A DNA stretch of 63,060 bases, the filler included, from Reticulomyxa filosa (taxonomy: Eukaryota; Protista; Foraminifera), in the NCBI GenBank assembly GCA_000512085.1. It is 21 parts of 21 records of this genome, joined end to end, with 100 filler letters (N's around TTAATTAATTAA, not from the genome) between each part and the next. Parts side by side here need not be neighbours in the genome. Positions count along the whole stretch, not along the records: positions 10,584 to 13,183 come from ASPP01003566.1; 20 more parts are not named here. The stretch is one strand, 5' to 3'. Positions 1 through 13,183 of this stretch are shown here, one piece after another. Made by a program: the position numbers and the translations under genes. Numbering within the stretch: the stretch's first letter is position 1; each line of letters starts with the position of its first letter. The notes beneath the pieces were generated by a model. It did no database searches. It saw only the letters and a program-made list of their open reading frames with translations, and had not been told where the DNA came from.

Positions 1-3000
1 GACCTTCTACAGTGGGATTTCTGTTATACGTTGGTTCGTTAGTTGATGATATTTGTGTATATCGAAATGTAGGTCCTACAGTAGGTGAACCCATTTGCTC
101 CACGATTGGTGTTCGTGTTGGTCCTAATGTTGGCATTGATGTTGGCCTGACGATTGTTGATTCGGTTTGATCGAATGTCGGTGATTGAGTTGTACCAATC
201 GTTGGAATTAATGTCGGTTTGGTAATTGGTGATTCAGTATGATCGAGTGTTGGAGATCTTGTTTGGCTACGTGTCGGCGATATTAAACTCGGTACTCCTG
301 TGACTTCACGTGTTGGCATATATACTGTTCCTGCAATAGGCGAATCTGTTTGAACAACTATTGGAAATAGTGTTGGCGTTTGTATTGACGTCGGCTGTGC
401 TGCTGGTATTGGTGCTGCTGTAATGTCAGCTGTAGATCGAAACGTAGGCATGTTTGTAACGTCAATTGTTGGCCTTGGCGTCGGTGCGGTAATTGGTGAT
501 CTAGTTTGGTCGTGTGTTGGTCTTGGAGTCGGCTGTGCAACTGGTGTGTCTGTTCGTCCAGCGGTTGGATGTGATATGGGTCTTGTTGTTGGTACTTTGC
601 TTGTTCCAGCTGTAGGCATCGATGTTTGTTCTACAATGGGCGAGTCAGTTTGTGTAGCAATTGGTGATAATGTTGTTCCAATTGTTGGGGTTCGCGTGGA
701 TTCAACAGTCAGTGTTGGTGTCGGTGTCTGTGTTGGCTCTATAACCGGCGTTCCTGTTTGGCCAAATGTTGGTGATGCCGTGATGTCAACTGTTGAACCT
801 GATGTCGGTACTTTTGTTTCAAGTGTTGGTGATTGTGCTAACGTCGGCGTTTGGGTTAGATCAAAAGTTGGTGTTGATATCGGATATGAAGTGGGCGTTT
901 GGATTGACTTTGAGGTAGGTGTTTGAGTTGGCTTTGAAGTTGGTCCATGTGTCGAAATTCTTGTTTGTCTTGGCGTTGGATTCTCGGTTGTGGAAAGCTT
1001 GTCTTTTGTTGGTGCGTGGGTCTGGCTTGCATCATCAGCCGCTTTATTATTTTATGTAGTGTATTGATTTTGCACAGTCAATACACTTTTTTGGATTTTT
1101 TCTTTCGTCTCTCATCTTTTTTATCATATCTAGCTAGCATCACACAAACAAATAACAAATAAAATACCTTTGCACACGGATGTTGCAACTCGAGGTATCA
1201 AGTACTCAAGATCCTCAAATATTGGCTCGAGAAAGATGTTGGAAACATAATTTGGATTGGTTGTGTTGAACAAACATTTGAAAGGCTGGTCATCGCCTTG
1301 TTGGTTATGCTTTTCAATCATGGGTTCGGTCATGATAACTAAGACTACATCAATGCCATTTTCGAGTAACCAGTCGTTTCTGATTCCATCACAATCTTCC
1401 AAAGAAAATTCTATTTCTGTTGCCATCACGAAGACAACTTTTCGGCCAGGTGTGGTTACGTTCATTAATTCAATGGCTCCCATTACAATCGCCACGTCGA
1501 TATTGGTTGGCAACGCGCGCGAACTCAAGTATTGCGAGCGCCCAATCTTACGAACGATTTGATCAACAGATAGCTCCTCTTCAATAGGAATAATCGAGGT
1601 GACATTGGAATCAAACTCCAAATAAGTAAACTTGGGTAATATCGGAGATTGCAAAGTCAAATATCGATAAGTTTGTTGTAAGAATCGTGTTTGCAGATAC
1701 CAATCATTTGCATGGTCTCCAAAGTATGAGAACGACGCATCTACCACAAAGGCCATTGCGGAAATGTCACAATCAATACGTTTCGTCGGGGAAGCAGTTG
1801 GATTCAAAGAAGAAATCATTGTCGGTGTGCGTGTCAATGTTTTGCTTGGTTGTTTCGATGGCAACAGCGAAGGTCCGTTTGTGTGCGATGACACTGTCGG
1901 AGATCCAGTAGGTTCACAAGTTTTTTTTTGAATCGTCTCGACTGAGCCAAATGGAATCAAGGCCTGTTCTAGCGCATAACTTGAACATAAGCTACATCTT
2001 GTGGAAACCACAGAATGAATTGAAACTTCCCACCATTCAATTCCTTTGCATTTCACGCCAAGAGATGAACATTCTTCCAAGCATTCTTCAAAAAAGCACG
2101 TTGTGTTTGCTGCTGTTGCACAATAACTGTGCGACTGTAGACAGGAGCTATTTGATATGGGACTGCTCCAGCATATTTGAGATGTCGGCGACCAAGTAGG
2201 GAATATGCTTGTGAGTCCGAACGAGAAGGTGCGTTGCTTGGCTGGACACTGGGCACCTCTGTTTGTCGTCGAGTAGGTCCATTGGTTGGTTCGAAGGTTG
2301 ACACTCCGTACTTTCGATAATCGGCTGAGTCGTTGGAGGCAATGTTGTGGGACCTAAGGTCGGAATTTGCGTGGTGCATGATCCCTTGCTTGTTACACTG
2401 ACGGCAGACGAAGGATCCGTGTCAATATACACTTTATCTGCAGATGTGCACAGGTCACAAAATACAAACGCTCGGAACTCAAAGGAAACGTTCCAAAATT
2501 CGATGCCTTGGCAATGATGATTTTGCGCACACGCGTTGAGACAGCGAGTGTAAGTGCAATTATCCTCTGCAAGATTCTGACAATAGGGCGACTTGGTGTC
2601 TGTACACTTGGTATTCCATTCTCTTTCTCCCCAACAATATGCTGCAGTTGGAGTTGGAGTCGGAGAGGTGGTGTCAGGTTGGGAACTGGGAGTCGGAGGA
2701 AGAGTTGTCGATGTGTCATTGCCGCAGTCGGGGATCTCACATTCGCCATAATAATCAATCACCACTCCAAAGCACTCGGCGAGACAAGGATTTGGATAAG
2801 TAAAGCCGTCTTGTCCACACACTTTGTCCCACGTTGGACTACAGCAGCATGTCAATGAGGTCGGTGGATTGCTTGGCGCTATCGAGGGGCTGTTTGTATG
2901 AACTGCAGCCGGGATCTGTGTTGGATTGTGTGTTGGGTCCCATATTGGGCTTTCCGTCGGATGATGGGTTGGAACTTCACTTAGAATCAGCGACGGACCT

Positions 3001-6000
3001 TCAGTTGGAGTACGTGTTGGACCAAGACTCGGAGTTTGGCTGGGCGAATCTGTTGTGACATATTCGGTTGGAAATTTGGAAGGACTTCGAGTTAGTTTTG
3101 TTGGGGAACGCGTTGGGTTGATAGTTGGCTCCAGTGTCGCTGCGATTGGTTCTTGCGTTGGCTTTTTACTTGGAGACAACGTTGCAAATGCTGCTGGATT
3201 AAAAGTAGGAGTATTACTGAGCGTGTGAGTAGGGATAGGGGTTGGAGAATTGCTTGGTTCTGTTGTGGAAAAGTTAAAAACAGCAGGAAGGTCCGTCGTT
3301 GGTAAATCGGTATATATTGTGGTTGGCACTGAGGGATGGGATGTCGGTTTGAATGTCGGTGTGGATGTTGGAATTGCGGACGGAGACCAGGTCGGTGTCG
3401 ATACGCCACCTATTTTGTTCAATGAAAAAAAAAAATTTGCATTGAAATGTCAAAGTGGTATCTGTCTAAAGTATTCACTTTCATTTATTCATCACAAAGT
3501 GTACACTTACGACAAATGTACCTGGCAAGCACAATCGTAGCAACAAAGAATGAATACTCTTTTTGCGATCCAAAGTCCCTTCCTCGTTTGCTAAATCTTT
3601 GTGCGTAAAGATGCTTGACAAATACTTGGAATTATGGGTGTCGAAGAAACAATACAAATTTTGCTTTGGAATGTCGTCATTCATGATGACAATGACCAAG
3701 TCAATTTCCAAAACACTTAGATAAGTGCTTTGGAGTTTTTTGCACCAGTTTGAATGTATCCGCCAGTTTTCATCGGTAATGGTCAACACAATGGTCTTTT
3801 GTCTTTCTGAGCCATTTACATACAACTGGAAATCAAACAAGTCTTCAATGGCTTGTTCCATTGCATTCAAAATGTCGTTTGCAACAAAGGGGTCATCGTT
3901 GTATAATTCCATCGATCGAATAATGTCAACAACAACATTTGCCTCCAACTTGCTACTCAAATTGTAATCGTTGATATCCAATTGGTGAAATTGCTTTCTG
4001 TCAAAATACTGCAAAATCTCTACATTCGGATTGGAGCCAGTCAAATATATTTCCCAATAAAGTTCTTCCAGCAAGAATTTTTGCTCCGAAAACGAGAAAA
4101 GAGTATTGGAGCCGGGACCTCCATGTTCGTCTTGAGGATACGCGGATGAGCTGCTGTCCACGACAAAGATCATGTCATCAACCCTACAGTTCGCCCGACC
4201 AATGGGACTGAACGTTGGGAGTTTGGTTGGGGAAGCAGTCGGATTGGTTGTTGGATCGGTGGGTGCCATCGACGGATTGGTGGTCGGGGTTGACGTTGGA
4301 GAGAATGTCGGTGTAAATGTCGGTGTTGCTGTTGGCATTGCTGATGGGGACACCGTTGGCATCGAGGTCGGCGCTATTGTTGGTACTGCAGATGGTGACA
4401 ATGTCGGGCTGGCAGACGGAGCAATGGTCGGACTCAGGGTTGGGGTTGTTGTGGGATTGTTTGAGGGCGAGAGAGTAGGCGCAGGAGTTGGAGACTCACT
4501 TGGAGCCGATGTTGGATTGGCGGTCGGAGAGAACGACGGAACTTGTGAGGGAGCTGCTGTTGGTGACACAGTCGGGCATACCTGCATTTGAATTCGGGAT
4601 TGAGGGTCATAGTAGACTCCAGGGTCATTTGCATTCGCATCTAAGCAGTTGCGAGAGCTATCGTAAAATGTCATATACAGTTGGTGCTGGTGTACGTCTA
4701 CACGAATACAAAGACAACACAGTCAAACATTAATATATGTACCGTTGGCGCAACAATAAACCATAATAGGGTGTATCACATGCGCCCCAACTTCCATAAG
4801 CGCCCCAACGCTTACACTTACACGGTCCGAGATCACACTCACTCACTTCTGTACTGCCACCTATAGATTTAAACAAAACATATTCATTTCATTAATAAAG
4901 ATACTTTTACACTTGCGTTAATTATATAAACATATACATGTTTTTTAAATACCAATGCAGCCAATAAAGTTTGAAATACGCGATGATGAACACATATCGT
5001 TGCTTACTGCGTACATGCAAAAAAAAAAAAAAAACCTCGTTGTCTTTGAAATAAAACATGTCAATAAATTGTATTTGCAAAAAATCTAGCGCAAAACTGA
5101 CCTGAAAGAGATGTTCGTGGACAAGACCGGGAACATGTTCTTGTGTGTGAGCGATGACCAACACCGCAAGTGTTGCGATCACAATTGCCCCAATCAGACC
5201 ATTGGCTCCAACACATGCAAAAATTTGGAATGGTGATTTGGCCTCCATAGAAACAAGATCTCCTGGATCCGTACATGGCAAAATAGCCTTGAGTTGATGG
5301 GGCATTTCCTTTGACCACCAACGACACATTGGTTACCGCATTGTCAAATTGGTCGAGGATCCACGTACTCTAAGACATAAATCATACAACACGTATAGCA
5401 CAATATCATCATCGCAACATATTGCATTTTTCGAGATTATGTTAAAAGAAGATAAATAATGATATCCTTACCGTTTGGGTTTGATTGATATGATTATAGG
5501 GCTCTCCACTCGTCGGCCAGCTTGTCAATTGGTGTATTGTACATTGATTCAAGAGACAATCGCAAGGCAGCTGTAATCGAACAAAATTAATTTTTTCATG
5601 AGACGACGGATCATGTTGGACTCGGTATGTGAATGTGGTTTCATCCAAAGTTGGACTGTAGTTTCTGGAGACAAAAGTCAGGTGCCAATTCAAAGCGCTT
5701 GGGTTCGTAGGAACTGAGCAGTGTGGCAGGTACTGTGAGATGGTGTTTGTCAATTTTTATCATTTGTTGCTCAGCAAAACAAACATTTTTTTTTTTTAAA
5801 AAAAAAGTATATTAATTTGTAACGTACATTTGGAGGTGTCTTGATATCATCACATTCCCACAACTTATTTGGTGTTGGACTGGAAGTCGGTTGGATTATT
5901 TGTTCAGGAACAGCTATGTTCGAATTGAAATTGTGTTTTTTTTTTAAAAATGGGGACAATCAGATTTGATTGTATAACAAACATACCGCAAGAAAAATCA

Positions 6001-7890
6001 ATGTCCCATTTCAGATTGTAGCCTAATGGATACGTTGGTATGGTGGATTGCGCGGAGCTAACACCACTGACGTACAGTAATGAGTCCACGTATTGTTGCA
6101 ACTCTGGGTCATACGTTGCAGAGTCAAACATGGACACTTGTCCAAATGAACCTGCTGTTCCCTTTGCCACCAATGAACGATGCATGATATTTTGAATGTC
6201 TCCATTGCTTCCTTGGATCACTAAGTCAAATAAATATTTTTCTTTTGGTTTCAATGTCAATAATTGGTTATAACTCGGCGATAATACAAATGAATAATTT
6301 TGACGTGTTACATTGCCTCCCCAAAAAAAAAAAAAAAAAAAATTGCTCCAATTTACTCTTGATAGTCTCTCAAAGAGAAATCGATACATAAGTAATTTCT
6401 TACATGTGTAACATGTGTCTTACCTCGTTGTGAAGATGATGTAAAAAGAAGTACTGGCGAAAGTGAGCTCATCACCGTGTTGGCACCAACAGATTTGGCT
6501 GTGGTGTTATCTTTCATTTCCCACACTAGCATTGTCAAAGTGACTTTATTGTTCACTTGAAACAATTCTACACTTATCGACGGTGTAAATATTTTTTCTG
6601 TGTCATACAGAGTGTTATTTGCCATAACGAGCAACAATCCAAGACGTACGTATCCGTTATTGGACAGGATGTTGCTATTGTATTGCACTGGATACAAGTT
6701 CACATCTGAATTGCAGCAGTCTGTTTCAATTTATAGAAATCCATTCCAATTCAATACAAACAACATCAAGCATTAAAAAAAAAAAAAAAATCATATACAT
6801 ATACATGTATATGTAAGTATGCAAATGTGTTATTTTCTCCAGCATTCCATTTTTGCGTAGCAGGACAAAAAAAACACAAAGACTTTTTCCAAGTTTGCCA
6901 AAAGTCCATCAAACATGCATGAGATACACGAGAAGAAAATTCTTTTTTTCCCTTTTGAAAAACAAAAAAAGGAAGAGATGAAGTGGAACAAAAAGAGGAA
7001 CAAAAGTAGATAACACCCACATAAGAACTAACTTATGCCACAGACGAGACTATACAACGTATCCTTCATTTCAATGTCCAATTGCGTGGTTTGGTTCATT
7101 TCGTCAATGTACTCGTCTTTGAATGCAAGCAAAGCACTGTTGGGATTCGTCGGGTCGTATTTTAAACACGACAAATATTCCAACCCATTCAAATTGTCAT
7201 TCAACGAGACCACGACATGACGTGAGCCTATCAATCAGCAATTTCGTATGCATTAAAAAATTAAAGCATTTATTCATTAATGTTTAAAAAAAAAAAATAC
7301 AACATACAATGTATGCATATATATACTTTTTTTTTTTTCATAACTGGGAAAGTACCAGTATGGATACAAACAAGGATCTTCAGAAGTGATGTCATGAAGA
7401 GGAAATTTGTCTGTGATATAGATAGTAACGAGCTCATGCGAAGGAATCCAATTGGAATATATCGGGACCATTGCCTCTTGAAATAACGTTTCTGATCAAA
7501 AGGGAGGGGGGGGGGAGCATTGTACAATACAAATATACTCATTTGTTCAAGTTTTTTCTCTGTCCTTGTCTTTTCACCCCCTTTTTTTTTTTCTAAAAAA
7601 AAAAAAACAACTAAACTTATTGAAAAATCATCATTGCCACGAATTGTCGTTTCAAACTTGTTGAAGTCAATGACATCCGACCCAAATGAAAAAATGACCT
7701 CTCCTTGATCGATAATAAGAGAATTGCGGACTTGAACATTTTTGGCTAAATGAATCGAATGGAAAGCTGCCAGATATGAGGTGTACTCGACCTTGTTTTG
7801 AATCCATTCTCTTAATCCGTGTAATAGGGCTGCATCGTTTGCTACTGATGGACTCACATCCACCATCCATACCACATCTACATCTCTCCC
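1..7890 (-). CDS. Giant multi-exon surface/secreted glycoprotein: vWA domains, TSP1 repeats, Kazal domain, PAN/apple-like Cys modules and long Pro/Thr/Ser mucin tracts (3'-partial; apparent frameshifts)
   Basis: vWA MIDAS-like motifs MVDVSPS (~7850), FVVDSSSS (~4150) and FVVDASFS (~1740). TSP1 WSQWSDWGNC..TCGVGHRSHTRTC (5130-5215) and a second WGAYGSWGAC (~4790). Kazal CSPTWDKVCGQDGFTYPNPCLAEC (~2770-2845). In-frame GT-AG introns at 1042-1167 and 3410-3521. The PT-rich exon 1-1041 stays open to the window edge. The 5' boundary is uncertain. Confidence 0.75.
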
Positions 7891-10583: not shown

Positions 10584-13183
10584 TTCTTCTTCTTCTTCTT
10601 CTATTGTTGGATCTAATTTATCCCAAATCTGTCTGTCTTCAAATTGGAATTCTGTTTCAGTTGCAATTTGATTTCCTTGAAGAAACATCTTAAATCCTAG
10701 ATTTTCACAATATATCTGAAATGTTGATTTGATTTTTTGAGGATTTATTTGAATCCTTAATTCTGATAATTTATTAGAAATATTTTTTACATGAATGTCA
10801 ATCCATTTCTCATTGAATGCTTCATATACTTGAGCTCGTGAAATTTTGGCTCCAATCTGATGCCGTTTCAACAAGTCAGGTAATACTGTCAATATCAATC
10901 GAAGCAAGAATGGCTCTTCCACCATTTTATATAAATTTGGATATTTTTGCAATGTTTCTTCATATTGTTGTACTGTCCAACTCAAATATTCATTCATTTT
11001 ATTTTTCTTATTCATCTTTACAAATTTATCAATATATCCATGCATCTGCTCCTTTGAAAAAGGCCATAAATGAACTATTGGCATGGTTGATATTAAATTA
11101 TGTTTCACATCTAATCCAAATAAAACTTGTTTAATATCTTCTTCACTTAATACATGGCTTCGACATGTAACAATAAAATTTGCATTCCATTCATTTAAAT
11201 TGAAACGATCGTAAAAATATCGCTCATTATTATCCTTACTATAATTATCAAAAATTTCATCGAATCCATCTAAGATAAATACAAATGAAAGATTTTCACG
11301 AACTATATCCATTATTTCCTTGTTGACTTGTTTCATTTGTAAGGCTTGAGAAATGATTTGTTTTTATATATTTGATTATAACATTTTGGTAATGAAATAT
11401 AAACAGGAATAGATGTTATAGAACCATTTGTATATGCCTCCCATAATGTTTCTTCTAAATGACGACAAAATAAGCTTTTTCCTGATCCTGATTTTCCTTG
11501 TAATACAACTACTTTTTTTTCTTGTTCACTTTTTTTTTCTAAAAACTCCATCATATATTGCTGACAATCATATGTTTTAACCTTCTTACCATCATTACTA
11601 TCACTATATGGATAATTATTTGCTTGTAATGGAATATATGTTTCAAGGGCTTGTGACATAGCTATATCTTCTTCTAATTCTTGCTTTCTTGCTTCTTTTA
11701 ATATTGATATAACATCAGCACAACTTGCTGGATTTGATTCTCCCATAATATATTTTTTAAAATAATCAAATAAAATAACATAAATCGCTTTTCCTTTTAT
11801 TTTTGTTGGATTAAATTTACAAAGTTGATCATATACAAATTTAATTAATTGTAATGATATATCTTTTCCATTCTTAATTTGTTCTTCATTTAATCCTTTT
11901 AATTGTGGAGGTTTTAATATTCGAATTTCTGAATGTGATTTATAACGATCAGAAATCTTTTTAATATCTTTTTCATCAATCCATTCACAAATAATATCAT
12001 TAATATTAGTTAATGTTTTGTCACTTGCTTGTTTTAATTCTTGTTCTTGTATTGATGAAATATTTGGTTTCCATACTCGAATTAATTCATAAAATAAATG
12101 ACTTAATTTTGGATTTTCAATAACAGTATATCCTTCTAAAGTTGTAAAATTTTTTAATGTTGCTTGCATTTCAATATAAACATCATGTTTTGGAACATAT
12201 AATTTAATATTATGAAATCTGTGATGTGTTTTTGATTGTTTATCAAAAAAATCTTTATCTTCAGATACAATTAGATTAAATTGTTCTGCTTTTTTCATTA
12301 CTGCAACTGCAGTTTGTAATTTGGTTGAATTATCACATAAAATAGTAAATCTTCCAATATCAAATACTTGATTAAAATCACCACTATAATCAATTTGAAT
12401 CTTTTCTAATAATCTTTCATTTCCTTTTAAATTTGGAGGTTTTACAACTGTAATTTCATATTTTTGTAATTCTGTTATCAAATTCTTAATTTCAATACTA
12501 TTCATTGCATTTTCACTTCTTTCTCTTAAATTTTCTAAATTTGTTGCATGCTGTTTAATTTTATTTGCTTTTAATTCGTATGATAATCCAGATTTAATTG
12601 GATATGTACATTGATAATTATTATCTATTACAGGTATTGGATCACCACTTGCACAAATTGAATGTTCAGAATTATAAAAAGTTGCTTTTACAATTAAGTT
12701 CACTGTTTCTTTTTTACAATCTGGACAACAAAAATTTGTCTTATTTGAAATAAATGTAATGCTATCGAATCCAATATTAACCCATACTGGTAATTTTGCT
12801 TTTGATGCCAAACAAGTTTCATTATTGCAATATCCTTGTAAATTAATTCCTGGTTTTGTTTCTCCAATTTCTGTTTTTTCTTTTTCTTTTTCTAAACTTT
12901 TGAGCTTGTTTAATGTAGCTATTTGGACTTCATTACCAATTATTTCCTTTTTCAAATTTTACAATCATTTATTTATATGCATATATATATATGTATATAT
13001 ATATGTATACATATATGCATATATTTCACCTGCTCGTCATTTCGCAAATCTTTAATTTTGATTTCTGGTTCTAATTTAGCCTTTTTAAATGAAGAAAATT
13101 GAAAACTAAATAAAAATTGAAGGTAATTATCTAAGAAAAAAAGTATTGCTTTATTTTTTTTTTTTTTTTTTACCTCTTCCTCG
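10584..13183 (-). CDS. NLR-like STAND protein: Cys-rich Zn module + RelA/SpoT-like nucleotidyltransferase + NACHT NTPase (partial at both ends; 1-bp frameshift ~11365)
   Basis: Zn module: PGINLQGYC...C and CCPDC. RelA/SpoT-like motifs: LKGNERLLEK..DYSGD...FDIGR, KDFF..HRFHN and IEMQAT. Walker A GKSGSGKS (~11474-11497) and Walker B FILDGFDE, followed by IVTCR and EPFLLRL. ORFs 11333-12955 and 10536-11336 join via the alternative frame KQIISQALQMKQ. Confidence 0.85.

Follow-up and report, generated by a model that had tools for sequence, protein, structure and literature searches.

Could a receptor-like protein of a eukaryote carry, in the position of its effector, an enzyme of the kind that bacteria use as a toxin? 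This question is raised by RFI_03874, a gene of the foraminiferan Reticulomyxa filosa. It is the single gene of ASPP01003566.1, a contig of 2,600 bp that is contained in its entirety at positions 10584-13183 of the window (the whole stretch of DNA that was analysed, 63,060 nucleotides with filler), and it is read from the minus strand. It combines a synthetase-like domain of the RelA/SpoT homologue (RSH) type with a NACHT domain, and paralogues add an array of WD40 repeats. Toxic enzymes of the RelA/SpoT type are bacterial weapons and anti-phage devices, and the eukaryotic fusions of RSH domains with NLRs (nucleotide-binding oligomerization domain-like receptors) have so far only been listed in surveys of fungal genomes. 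On the basis of sequence and of analogy with characterized systems, we consider it fairly probable that in this RSH-NACHT-WD40 family the RSH domain would serve as a sensor-triggered toxic pyrophosphokinase. The parts of the gene on which the argument depends are the following.

11336-12955, minus strand: main open frame (frame 1), 540 codons; open reading frame (ORF) 11333-12955 with its stop codon
12539-12874, minus strand: N-terminal all-beta domain, residues 28-139 of the ORF
11966-12538, minus strand: RSH synthetase-like domain, residues 140-330, recognized by Pfam, PDB profile search, structural model, Foldseek and VIA comparison, residue census and dN/dS
11546-11965, minus strand: helical linker between RSH and NACHT, residues 331-470, conserved in paralogues and collinear with the metagenomic protein P0100
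11366-11545, minus strand: first half of NACHT, frame 1, with Walker A and the stretch PVYISLPKCY (11378-11407)
11361-11365, minus strand: frame break, a run of five A on the coding strand with a one-base frame shift
10584-11360, minus strand: second half of NACHT and the helical domain after it, frame 2, open to the contig end and ending in poly-Glu, collinear with the corresponding regions in P0066 and P0100

The RSH synthetase-like domain

The Pfam family RelA_SpoT (PF04607) matches residues 177-264 when the whole ORF is searched (E 4e-4, 21.0 bits). All 32 relatives scanned separately match PF04607 at E 0.1 or better (best E 8.4e-7), and no other Pfam family matches more than four of them. 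Weak PF04607 marks are already present in the public database for the paralogues P0007 and P0008 and for P0044, so the combination of RSH and NACHT is detectable from public marks, yet it is undescribed in R. filosa. A profile of the family, compared with the sequences of the PDB, retrieved a single match, the toxin domain of Tas1 (E 0.0014), and no housekeeping synthetase of the RelQ, RelP or Rel type. The alignment with Tas1 spans the basic strand-helix and the Asp motif and is weaker over the C-terminal H..YE.W helix.

Structural comparison leads to the same place. An AlphaFold model of residues 140-330, built with 32 sequences, has a mean pLDDT (predicted local distance difference test) of 84, and its best 50 Foldseek matches in the PDB are all RSH synthetases, with Tas1 first (E 4.5e-7, template modelling (TM) score 0.58) and SAS1/RelQ, RelP, Rel and an exported Streptomyces synthetase among the further ones. 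Tas1 also comes first, with the highest identity (20-21%), in the VIA fold comparison, where its Z margin over SAS1 is within the tie range. The same comparison sets the domain apart from other nucleotidyltransferases of the Pol-beta type, cGAS/CD-NTase enzymes being found at lower Z. By sequence as well as by structure, the domain is closer to Tas1 than to the housekeeping (p)ppGpp synthetases RelQ/SAS1, RelP/SAS2 and RelA/Rel/SpoT, which have a GYxSxH G-loop and an ExQxRT motif. It is therefore predicted to have the RelA/SpoT synthetase fold and to be nearest to toxin domains of the Tas1/Apk1 type. A feature search of the ESM Atlas returned mostly unnamed clusters, with one RelA_SpoT cluster at rank 11 as a weak lead; scans with the PADLOC and NCBIfam libraries gave P-loop noise only and were of no help with RSH or NACHT.

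A first-pass annotation of this DNA had proposed a RelA/SpoT-type domain upstream of a NACHT from the order of its motifs. All the Syn-type and NACHT motifs that it quoted are present where it had placed them, on the minus strand in the region of ORF 11333-12955. Those of the RSH domain, numbered by residue of the ORF, are as follows.

12401-12442, minus strand: K..ERLLEK, basic strand-helix K172..K185
12350-12364, minus strand: F-D199-I-G-R
12209-12265, minus strand: G-loop KDFF..HHRFHN with H244-H245-R246
12158-12172, minus strand: E262-M-Q264-A-T
12071-12100, minus strand: H286..Y289..W295

A residue census was made over 36 aligned relatives, the register being checked against distant RSH kin and Tas1. 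The basic residues of the donor site are kept in nearly all of them (K172 in 33, K177 in 35, R181 in 32 and K185 in 34), as are the Mg-binding Asp199 (35 of 36) with its neighbours G201 (35) and R202 (34). Glu262 is found in 33 of 33, Gln264 in 34 of 34, H286 in 34 and Y289 in 35 relatives. The basic residues for the ATP donor, the Mg-binding Asp and the catalytic Glu and Gln are thus all present in the canonical order. The checks that had been proposed along with the motifs, a structural match and conservation of the Asp and Glu across paralogues, thereby came out in favour of a RelA/SpoT-type domain.

The domain also stands out by its rate of change. When the window copy was compared with two paralogous loci, the RSH domain had the lowest non-synonymous divergence (pN 0.10-0.155) and a ratio of non-synonymous to synonymous divergence (dN/dS) of 0.08-0.09, against 0.17-0.33 for the N-terminal domain, the linker and the start of NACHT. 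Synonymous divergence is saturated, which makes these ratios rough, but the ranking of the domains is clear: the RSH domain is the part of the protein under the strongest constraint.

The G-loop, the NACHT domain and the frame break

A number of observations on the window copy weigh against a toxic pyrophosphokinase. The gene is truncated, with both ends missing, and within this copy it is interrupted by the frame break between Walker A and Walker B. The isolated RSH domain scores 23.3 bits against PF04607 (E 8e-5), below the gathering score of 27. The equivalent of the canonical RSH motif ExQxRT is EMQATL, in which the Arg is absent. In the G-loop, which reads HHRF, the acceptor-stacking Tyr is replaced by His245, and this loop is the least confident region of the model (pLDDT 62-65). 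The G-loop Tyr has been described as conserved in all characterized synthetases, whatever their acceptor, and the structures of the toxin FaRel2 made use of a Y128F form (PMC11782079).

The G-loop, the missing Arg and the low Pfam score could all be accommodated if the RSH-like domain were a non-catalytic module for nucleotide binding or scaffolding, with for example a regulatory or oligomerization role, and the family signalled in another manner. The His is, after all, found in most paralogues as well as in the window copy. We think this improbable. Distant relatives have G-Y-R-D, the Tas1-like kin among them, where the family has T-H-[H/Y]-R-F, the base-stacking Tyr corresponding to position 245. 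At this position 27 of 35 relatives have His and eight have Tyr, and Tyr is also retained in the G-loop of the distant kin P0100, P0092 and P0098. Residue 245 changes its state seven times on a maximum-likelihood tree of 34 family members, with at least three changes forced by well-supported branches, and the clustering of the two states does not exceed that of shuffled labels. Together with the near invariance of the donor-site and catalytic residues and with a dN/dS that suits an enzyme more than a scaffold, the Tyr retained in eight paralogues and in the distant kin argues for a domain that would be catalytic. His and Tyr may be read as near-equivalent aromatic stacking residues rather than as proof of a new acceptor.

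The suggestion in the first-pass annotation that the G-loop points to an acceptor other than GDP or GTP has to be adjusted in this light. Its register for the exchange of Tyr for His was right, but the exchange is weak evidence for a changed acceptor because the site has switched at least three times among paralogues. Its second point, a His to Asn exchange in the same loop, is moot, since the nearest, Tas1-like relatives do not have that His either.

The motifs of the NACHT domain are present in the window but are distributed over two frames.

11474-11497, minus strand, frame 1: Walker A, GKSGSGKS
11256-11285, minus strand, frame 2: Walker B, FVFILDGFDE, of the form hhhhDGhDE
11154-11174, minus strand, frame 2: sensor-1-like or TxR motif, IVTCRSH
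11055-11069, minus strand, frame 2: LWPFS

The two halves, searched apart, score 18.3 bits (residues 482-521) and 13.0 bits with Pfam NACHT (PF05729), under its cut-off of 26.7, which intact paralogues pass with 31-45 bits. The identity of the NACHT that had been called clear at first holds in intact paralogues (43-45 bits); the break within it had been overlooked. The break point is the run of five A at 11361-11365. Frame 1 reads PVYISLPKCYNQIYKNKSFLKPYK and then meets a stop at 11333-11335; frame 2 reads KQIISQALQMKQVNKEIMDIVRENLSFVFILDGFDE. The paralogues P0007 and P0008 are unbroken at the equivalent stretch (..LPKCYxxxxxxxIISQAxQ..). In the NCBI model of RFI_03874 the region of the break (about 11337-11410) is excised as an intron, by which SIP is joined to EIMDIV and the conserved NACHT stretch PVYISLPKCY..IISQALQ is removed. 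The same model closes with a short out-of-frame terminal exon (IQTDLG; 10584-10700), though the frame is open to the contig end.

Does the window copy, then, still encode a receptor? If the break were genuine, the copy would be a pseudogene from which no full-length protein is made, whatever the rest of the family does. The two Walker motifs lie in separate frames with a stop between them and the annotators needed an invented intron that drops conserved residues, which would suit such a state. On the other side, the coding sequence of about 2.4 kb has no other break, and this one lies in a homopolymer, where sequencing errors classically occur. Furthermore, given a saturated synonymous divergence from paralogues together with a low dN/dS, any inactivation would have to be very recent. 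The break is either a homopolymer error of sequencing or assembly or a very recent inactivation, and we regard a pseudogene as rather unlikely, albeit a possibility to be taken seriously for this one copy.

Full architecture, the family and its relatives

The missing end of the protein can be supplied from paralogues. The contig ends in the helical domain after NACHT, before any repeats, and the first-pass annotation had rightly stated that the C-terminal sensor was lost at the contig end. In P0066 (ETO36350.1, 1,734 aa) one gene encodes an RSH domain at residues 142-329 and then 14 WD40 stretches, with a NACHT that becomes visible through alignment with P0100. P0064 also shows a WD40 array, and the loci L001 and L002 have the same domain order spread over adjacent ORFs. 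Combined, these sequences indicate the full order as Cys4 beta-sandwich, RSH, helical linker, NACHT, helical domain, pentapeptide-like stretch and about 12-14 WD40 repeats.

The pentapeptide-like stretch (..LEGTNLKNANLNQVSFYQAFLNNANFTNAS..) precedes the WD40 array at about 4283-5300 in L001, at about 10346-11000 in L002 and at 984-1009 in P0065, where Pfam Pentapeptide matches with E 1.8e-5. In L002 a gene of 1,692 aa (871-6041, minus strand) with no Pfam match lies upstream of the paralogue P0008, on the opposite strand.

Two of these parts have no family of their own. The N-terminal domain (residues 28-139) has a confidently modelled all-beta fold, a beta-sandwich (pLDDT 90), with a conserved Cys4 site made up of Cx4C (12812-12829) and CPxC (12716-12727). 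It matches no Pfam family, and a fold search of the PDB gave generic matches only, with no convincing solved relative. Its shape matches unnamed eukaryotic clusters of the ESM Atlas (TM 0.70-0.75 over 103-107 residues), and in some of these, which come from sponges, rotifers and Mucoromycota, it is joined with a ubiquitin, RING or ADP-ribosyltransferase domain. It may be an undescribed and widespread eukaryotic adaptor domain. The linker (residues 331-470) likewise has no Pfam match and carries a conserved motif, ALETYIPLQAN. The domain content as first described, RSH and NACHT, has held; the Cys4 domain, an upstream intron and the model intron over the frame break had been missed.

The family is large. 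A word-based search gave 63 proteins, 61 of them from R. filosa and many of these fragments on short contigs. The two other matches are metagenomic (P0044, 59% identity; P0053, 36%). With at least 60 annotated members, R. filosa has, by sequence, an expanded family of the STAND/NLR type. An exhaustive profile search over 1.84 billion representatives listed 85 proteins at E 0.001 or below, 42 of them at 1e-10 or below; all traceable ones of the 42 are members of the R. filosa family and the remainder look like short fragments.

One distant match bears on the history of the protein. P0100, a metagenomic, intron-less gene product of 1,170 aa (L003 2745-6257, ENA sample ERZ25070786), has ankyrin repeats, RSH and NACHT, and its collinearity with P0066 over RSH, linker, NACHT and the helical domain has E values of 8e-48 to 2e-50 at 26-27% identity. 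The RSH-NACHT cassette therefore predates the R. filosa family. The gene for P0100 has about 50-53% GC, against 36-38% in the first 3 kb of its contig.

Other distant matches place the RSH domain in different company. P0091, P0103, P0123, P0124 and P0128 combine a Tas1-like RSH domain with TPR_10/TPR_12 repeats; P0124 is from the stramenopile Triparma laevis, and no NACHT was found in these proteins by Pfam at the thresholds used. They suggest, from their sequences, a wider eukaryotic set of fusions between RSH domains and repeats. P0115, from the cryptophyte Guillardia theta, is a profile match with no Pfam domain. Polymorphic-toxin contexts of bacterial or phage type are also encountered, namely proteins with the core of an extracellular contractile injection system (eCIS), a MuF fusion and DUF285 proteins. 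P0094 (3,127 aa) has two RSH-like copies together with an eCIS core domain and, at its C-terminus, a protease of the calpain type, P0099 (2,115 aa) has two RSH-like copies and a phage Mu F-like head-morphogenesis domain, and P0106 is an eCIS-linked relative.

How does the family compare with known systems? RelA_SpoT has been catalogued since 2014 as a rare N-terminal domain in NLRs of fungi, including the combination RelA_SpoT-NACHT-WD40, with a proposed ppGpp-related role (PMC4986451); the first-pass annotation had already named RelA_SpoT as a fungal NLR effector. Of the N-termini annotated there, under 1% belong to the fungal class (Dyrka et al. 2014, PMC4986451), and in a survey of Sordariales 17 such NLRs were found, still a minor canonical class (PMC12258605). 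The likeness consists of an RSH domain in the effector position followed by NACHT and WD40, and both groups are known from sequence alone. There are also differences. Where the fungal class is rare, the R. filosa family has its many members within Rhizaria; its proteins have an extra Cys4 beta-sandwich before RSH; and its RSH domain is divergent, under the Pfam cut-off, nearest to Tas1 and variable between His and Tyr in the acceptor loop. Common descent with the fungal RelA_SpoT NLRs is not supported by the profile search: names were looked up for 20 of the 85 proteins, and no named fungal protein is among these 20. Within the collection of papers that was searched, none joined Reticulomyxa with NACHT and none dealt with RSH-NACHT proteins outside fungi.

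Among bacterial enzymes, Tas1/Apk1 of Pseudomonas aeruginosa (PDB 6OX6) is a type VI secreted interbacterial toxin, a (p)ppApp synthetase that is restrained by the immunity protein Tis1. Unlike Tas1, the R. filosa domain is an internal part of a eukaryotic NACHT-WD40 protein. Neither delivery by secretion nor a Tis1-type immunity protein was encountered; for an immunity gene only the contig was considered, and it holds no other gene. CapRel(SJ46) and other toxSAS enzymes (FaRel2, PhRel2) are RSH toxins of anti-phage defence that pyrophosphorylate tRNA. CapRel is a small bacterial protein in which a C-terminal pseudo-zinc finger is both antitoxin and sensor, whereas the presumed switch in R. 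filosa is the NACHT-WD40 part. The Cys-rich domain of R. filosa is an N-terminal beta-sandwich rather than a C-terminal pseudo-zinc finger, and the RSH domain is followed by a helical linker and NACHT instead of an antitoxin domain of the CapRel type. The small housekeeping synthetases RelQ and RelP differ again, in forming tetramers via their C-terminal helices.

Possible mechanism, and other features of the contig

By analogy with other NLRs, binding of a ligand by the WD40 array would release the NACHT module, which would then exchange its nucleotide and oligomerize. Oligomerization would cluster or unmask the N-terminal RSH domains and so activate them. With ATP as the donor, the active domains would place pyrophosphate on an acceptor's 3'-OH, and this transfer would lead to growth arrest or death of the affected part of the syncytial cell.

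Which acceptor might be used? The RSH enzymes that are toxic either make (p)ppApp or pyrophosphorylate tRNA, and they serve in defence (PMC11782079, PMC12691689). Because of the affinity of the RSH domain to Tas1, adenine nucleotides are the likeliest candidates, with an expectation of not quite an even chance; the outcome would be (p)ppApp together with depletion of ATP, as in Tas1. The CCA ends of tRNA, as in CapRel and FaRel2, would be a minor candidate, and some other acceptor, or no catalysis at all, deserves about the same modest weight. Guanine nucleotides seem slightly less probable still.

Either effector logic is feasible in an NLR, and the active domain might, instead of being a toxin itself, make a diffusible second-messenger nucleotide for separate downstream proteins, in the manner of cGAS or TIR. 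Alarmones do signal in bacteria and plastids, and cGAS/CD-NTase enzymes share the fold, if at the lower Z mentioned above. The closest domains by sequence and fold, however, are those of toxins (Tas1, the eCIS-linked P0094 and P0106 and the MuF fusion P0099), and R. filosa has no known receptor for a nucleotide of this kind, though no search for one was made. We therefore think a messenger role improbable and retain the toxic pyrophosphokinase as the preferred effector.

What the receptor would recognize is a separate matter. The cell of R. filosa is large and multinucleate and forms networks, and it could be imagined that the family serves in self/non-self recognition when reticulopodial networks fuse, comparable to fungal heterokaryon incompatibility by NACHT-WD40 proteins, rather than in defence against pathogens. 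The family is large and paralogous, and its tripartite build is that of fungal NLRs of the NWD/HET type, RelA_SpoT-NACHT-WD40 included (PMC4986451). On the other hand, the WD40 arrays lack the homogenization of DNA repeats by which het genes of fungi are typically marked (Tandem Repeats Finder gave an empty result in L002), and the two roles are not mutually exclusive. On the evidence of sequence, we consider fusion recognition in place of defence unlikely. In summary of the first-pass claims, what was observed is confirmed and the reading of the domains is supported; the enzymatic activity and the immune or cell-death role are what we infer by analogy for a sensor-triggered toxic pyrophosphokinase.

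On a wider scale, and with considerable reserve, Foraminifera may be pictured as having a large NLR-type surveillance system in which a toxin-type pyrophosphokinase, acting through (p)ppApp or tRNA, signals death or arrest and seals off infected or foreign parts of the syncytium. The RSH-linker-NACHT cassette would be shared with other organisms, as P0100 suggests, and the Tas1-like domain would be used in fusion with TPR repeats in other protists. With a rhizarian family of this kind, the set of immune modules that bacteria and eukaryotes have in common would reach a third eukaryotic supergroup. The family would also be a tractable case, with a small domain and an acceptor loop that occurs naturally with His or with Tyr, in which to ask if alarmone-type chemistry signals death or arrest in a eukaryotic cytoplasm.

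The remaining features of the contig concern the 5' part of the gene and the contig edges. The deposited protein of RFI_03874 (P0001, 747 aa, partial) is the top database match and is 100% identical. It extends beyond the main open frame by an exon and an intron.

13030-13080, minus strand: upstream exon, 5' partial, encoding AKLEPEIKIKDLRNDEQ, which matches the N-terminus of the deposited model P0001
12947-13029, minus strand: GT..AG intron of 83 nt, over which P0001 joins ...NDEQ to EIIGNE

The frame of the upstream exon is open to the contig end without an ATG, so the start codon could not be placed. ORFs of 43-105 aa on the plus strand are antisense to conserved coding sequence and are regarded as not genuine genes. 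The GT..AG intron is filled by a TA/CA-rich microsatellite at 12964-13024. A run of 18 T lies at 13154-13171 on the plus strand, close to the 3' edge, and (TTC)6 at 10584-10601, which is (GAA)6 and therefore poly-Glu on the coding strand, forms the other edge; such simple repeats probably account for the ending of the assembly at the edges of this contig.

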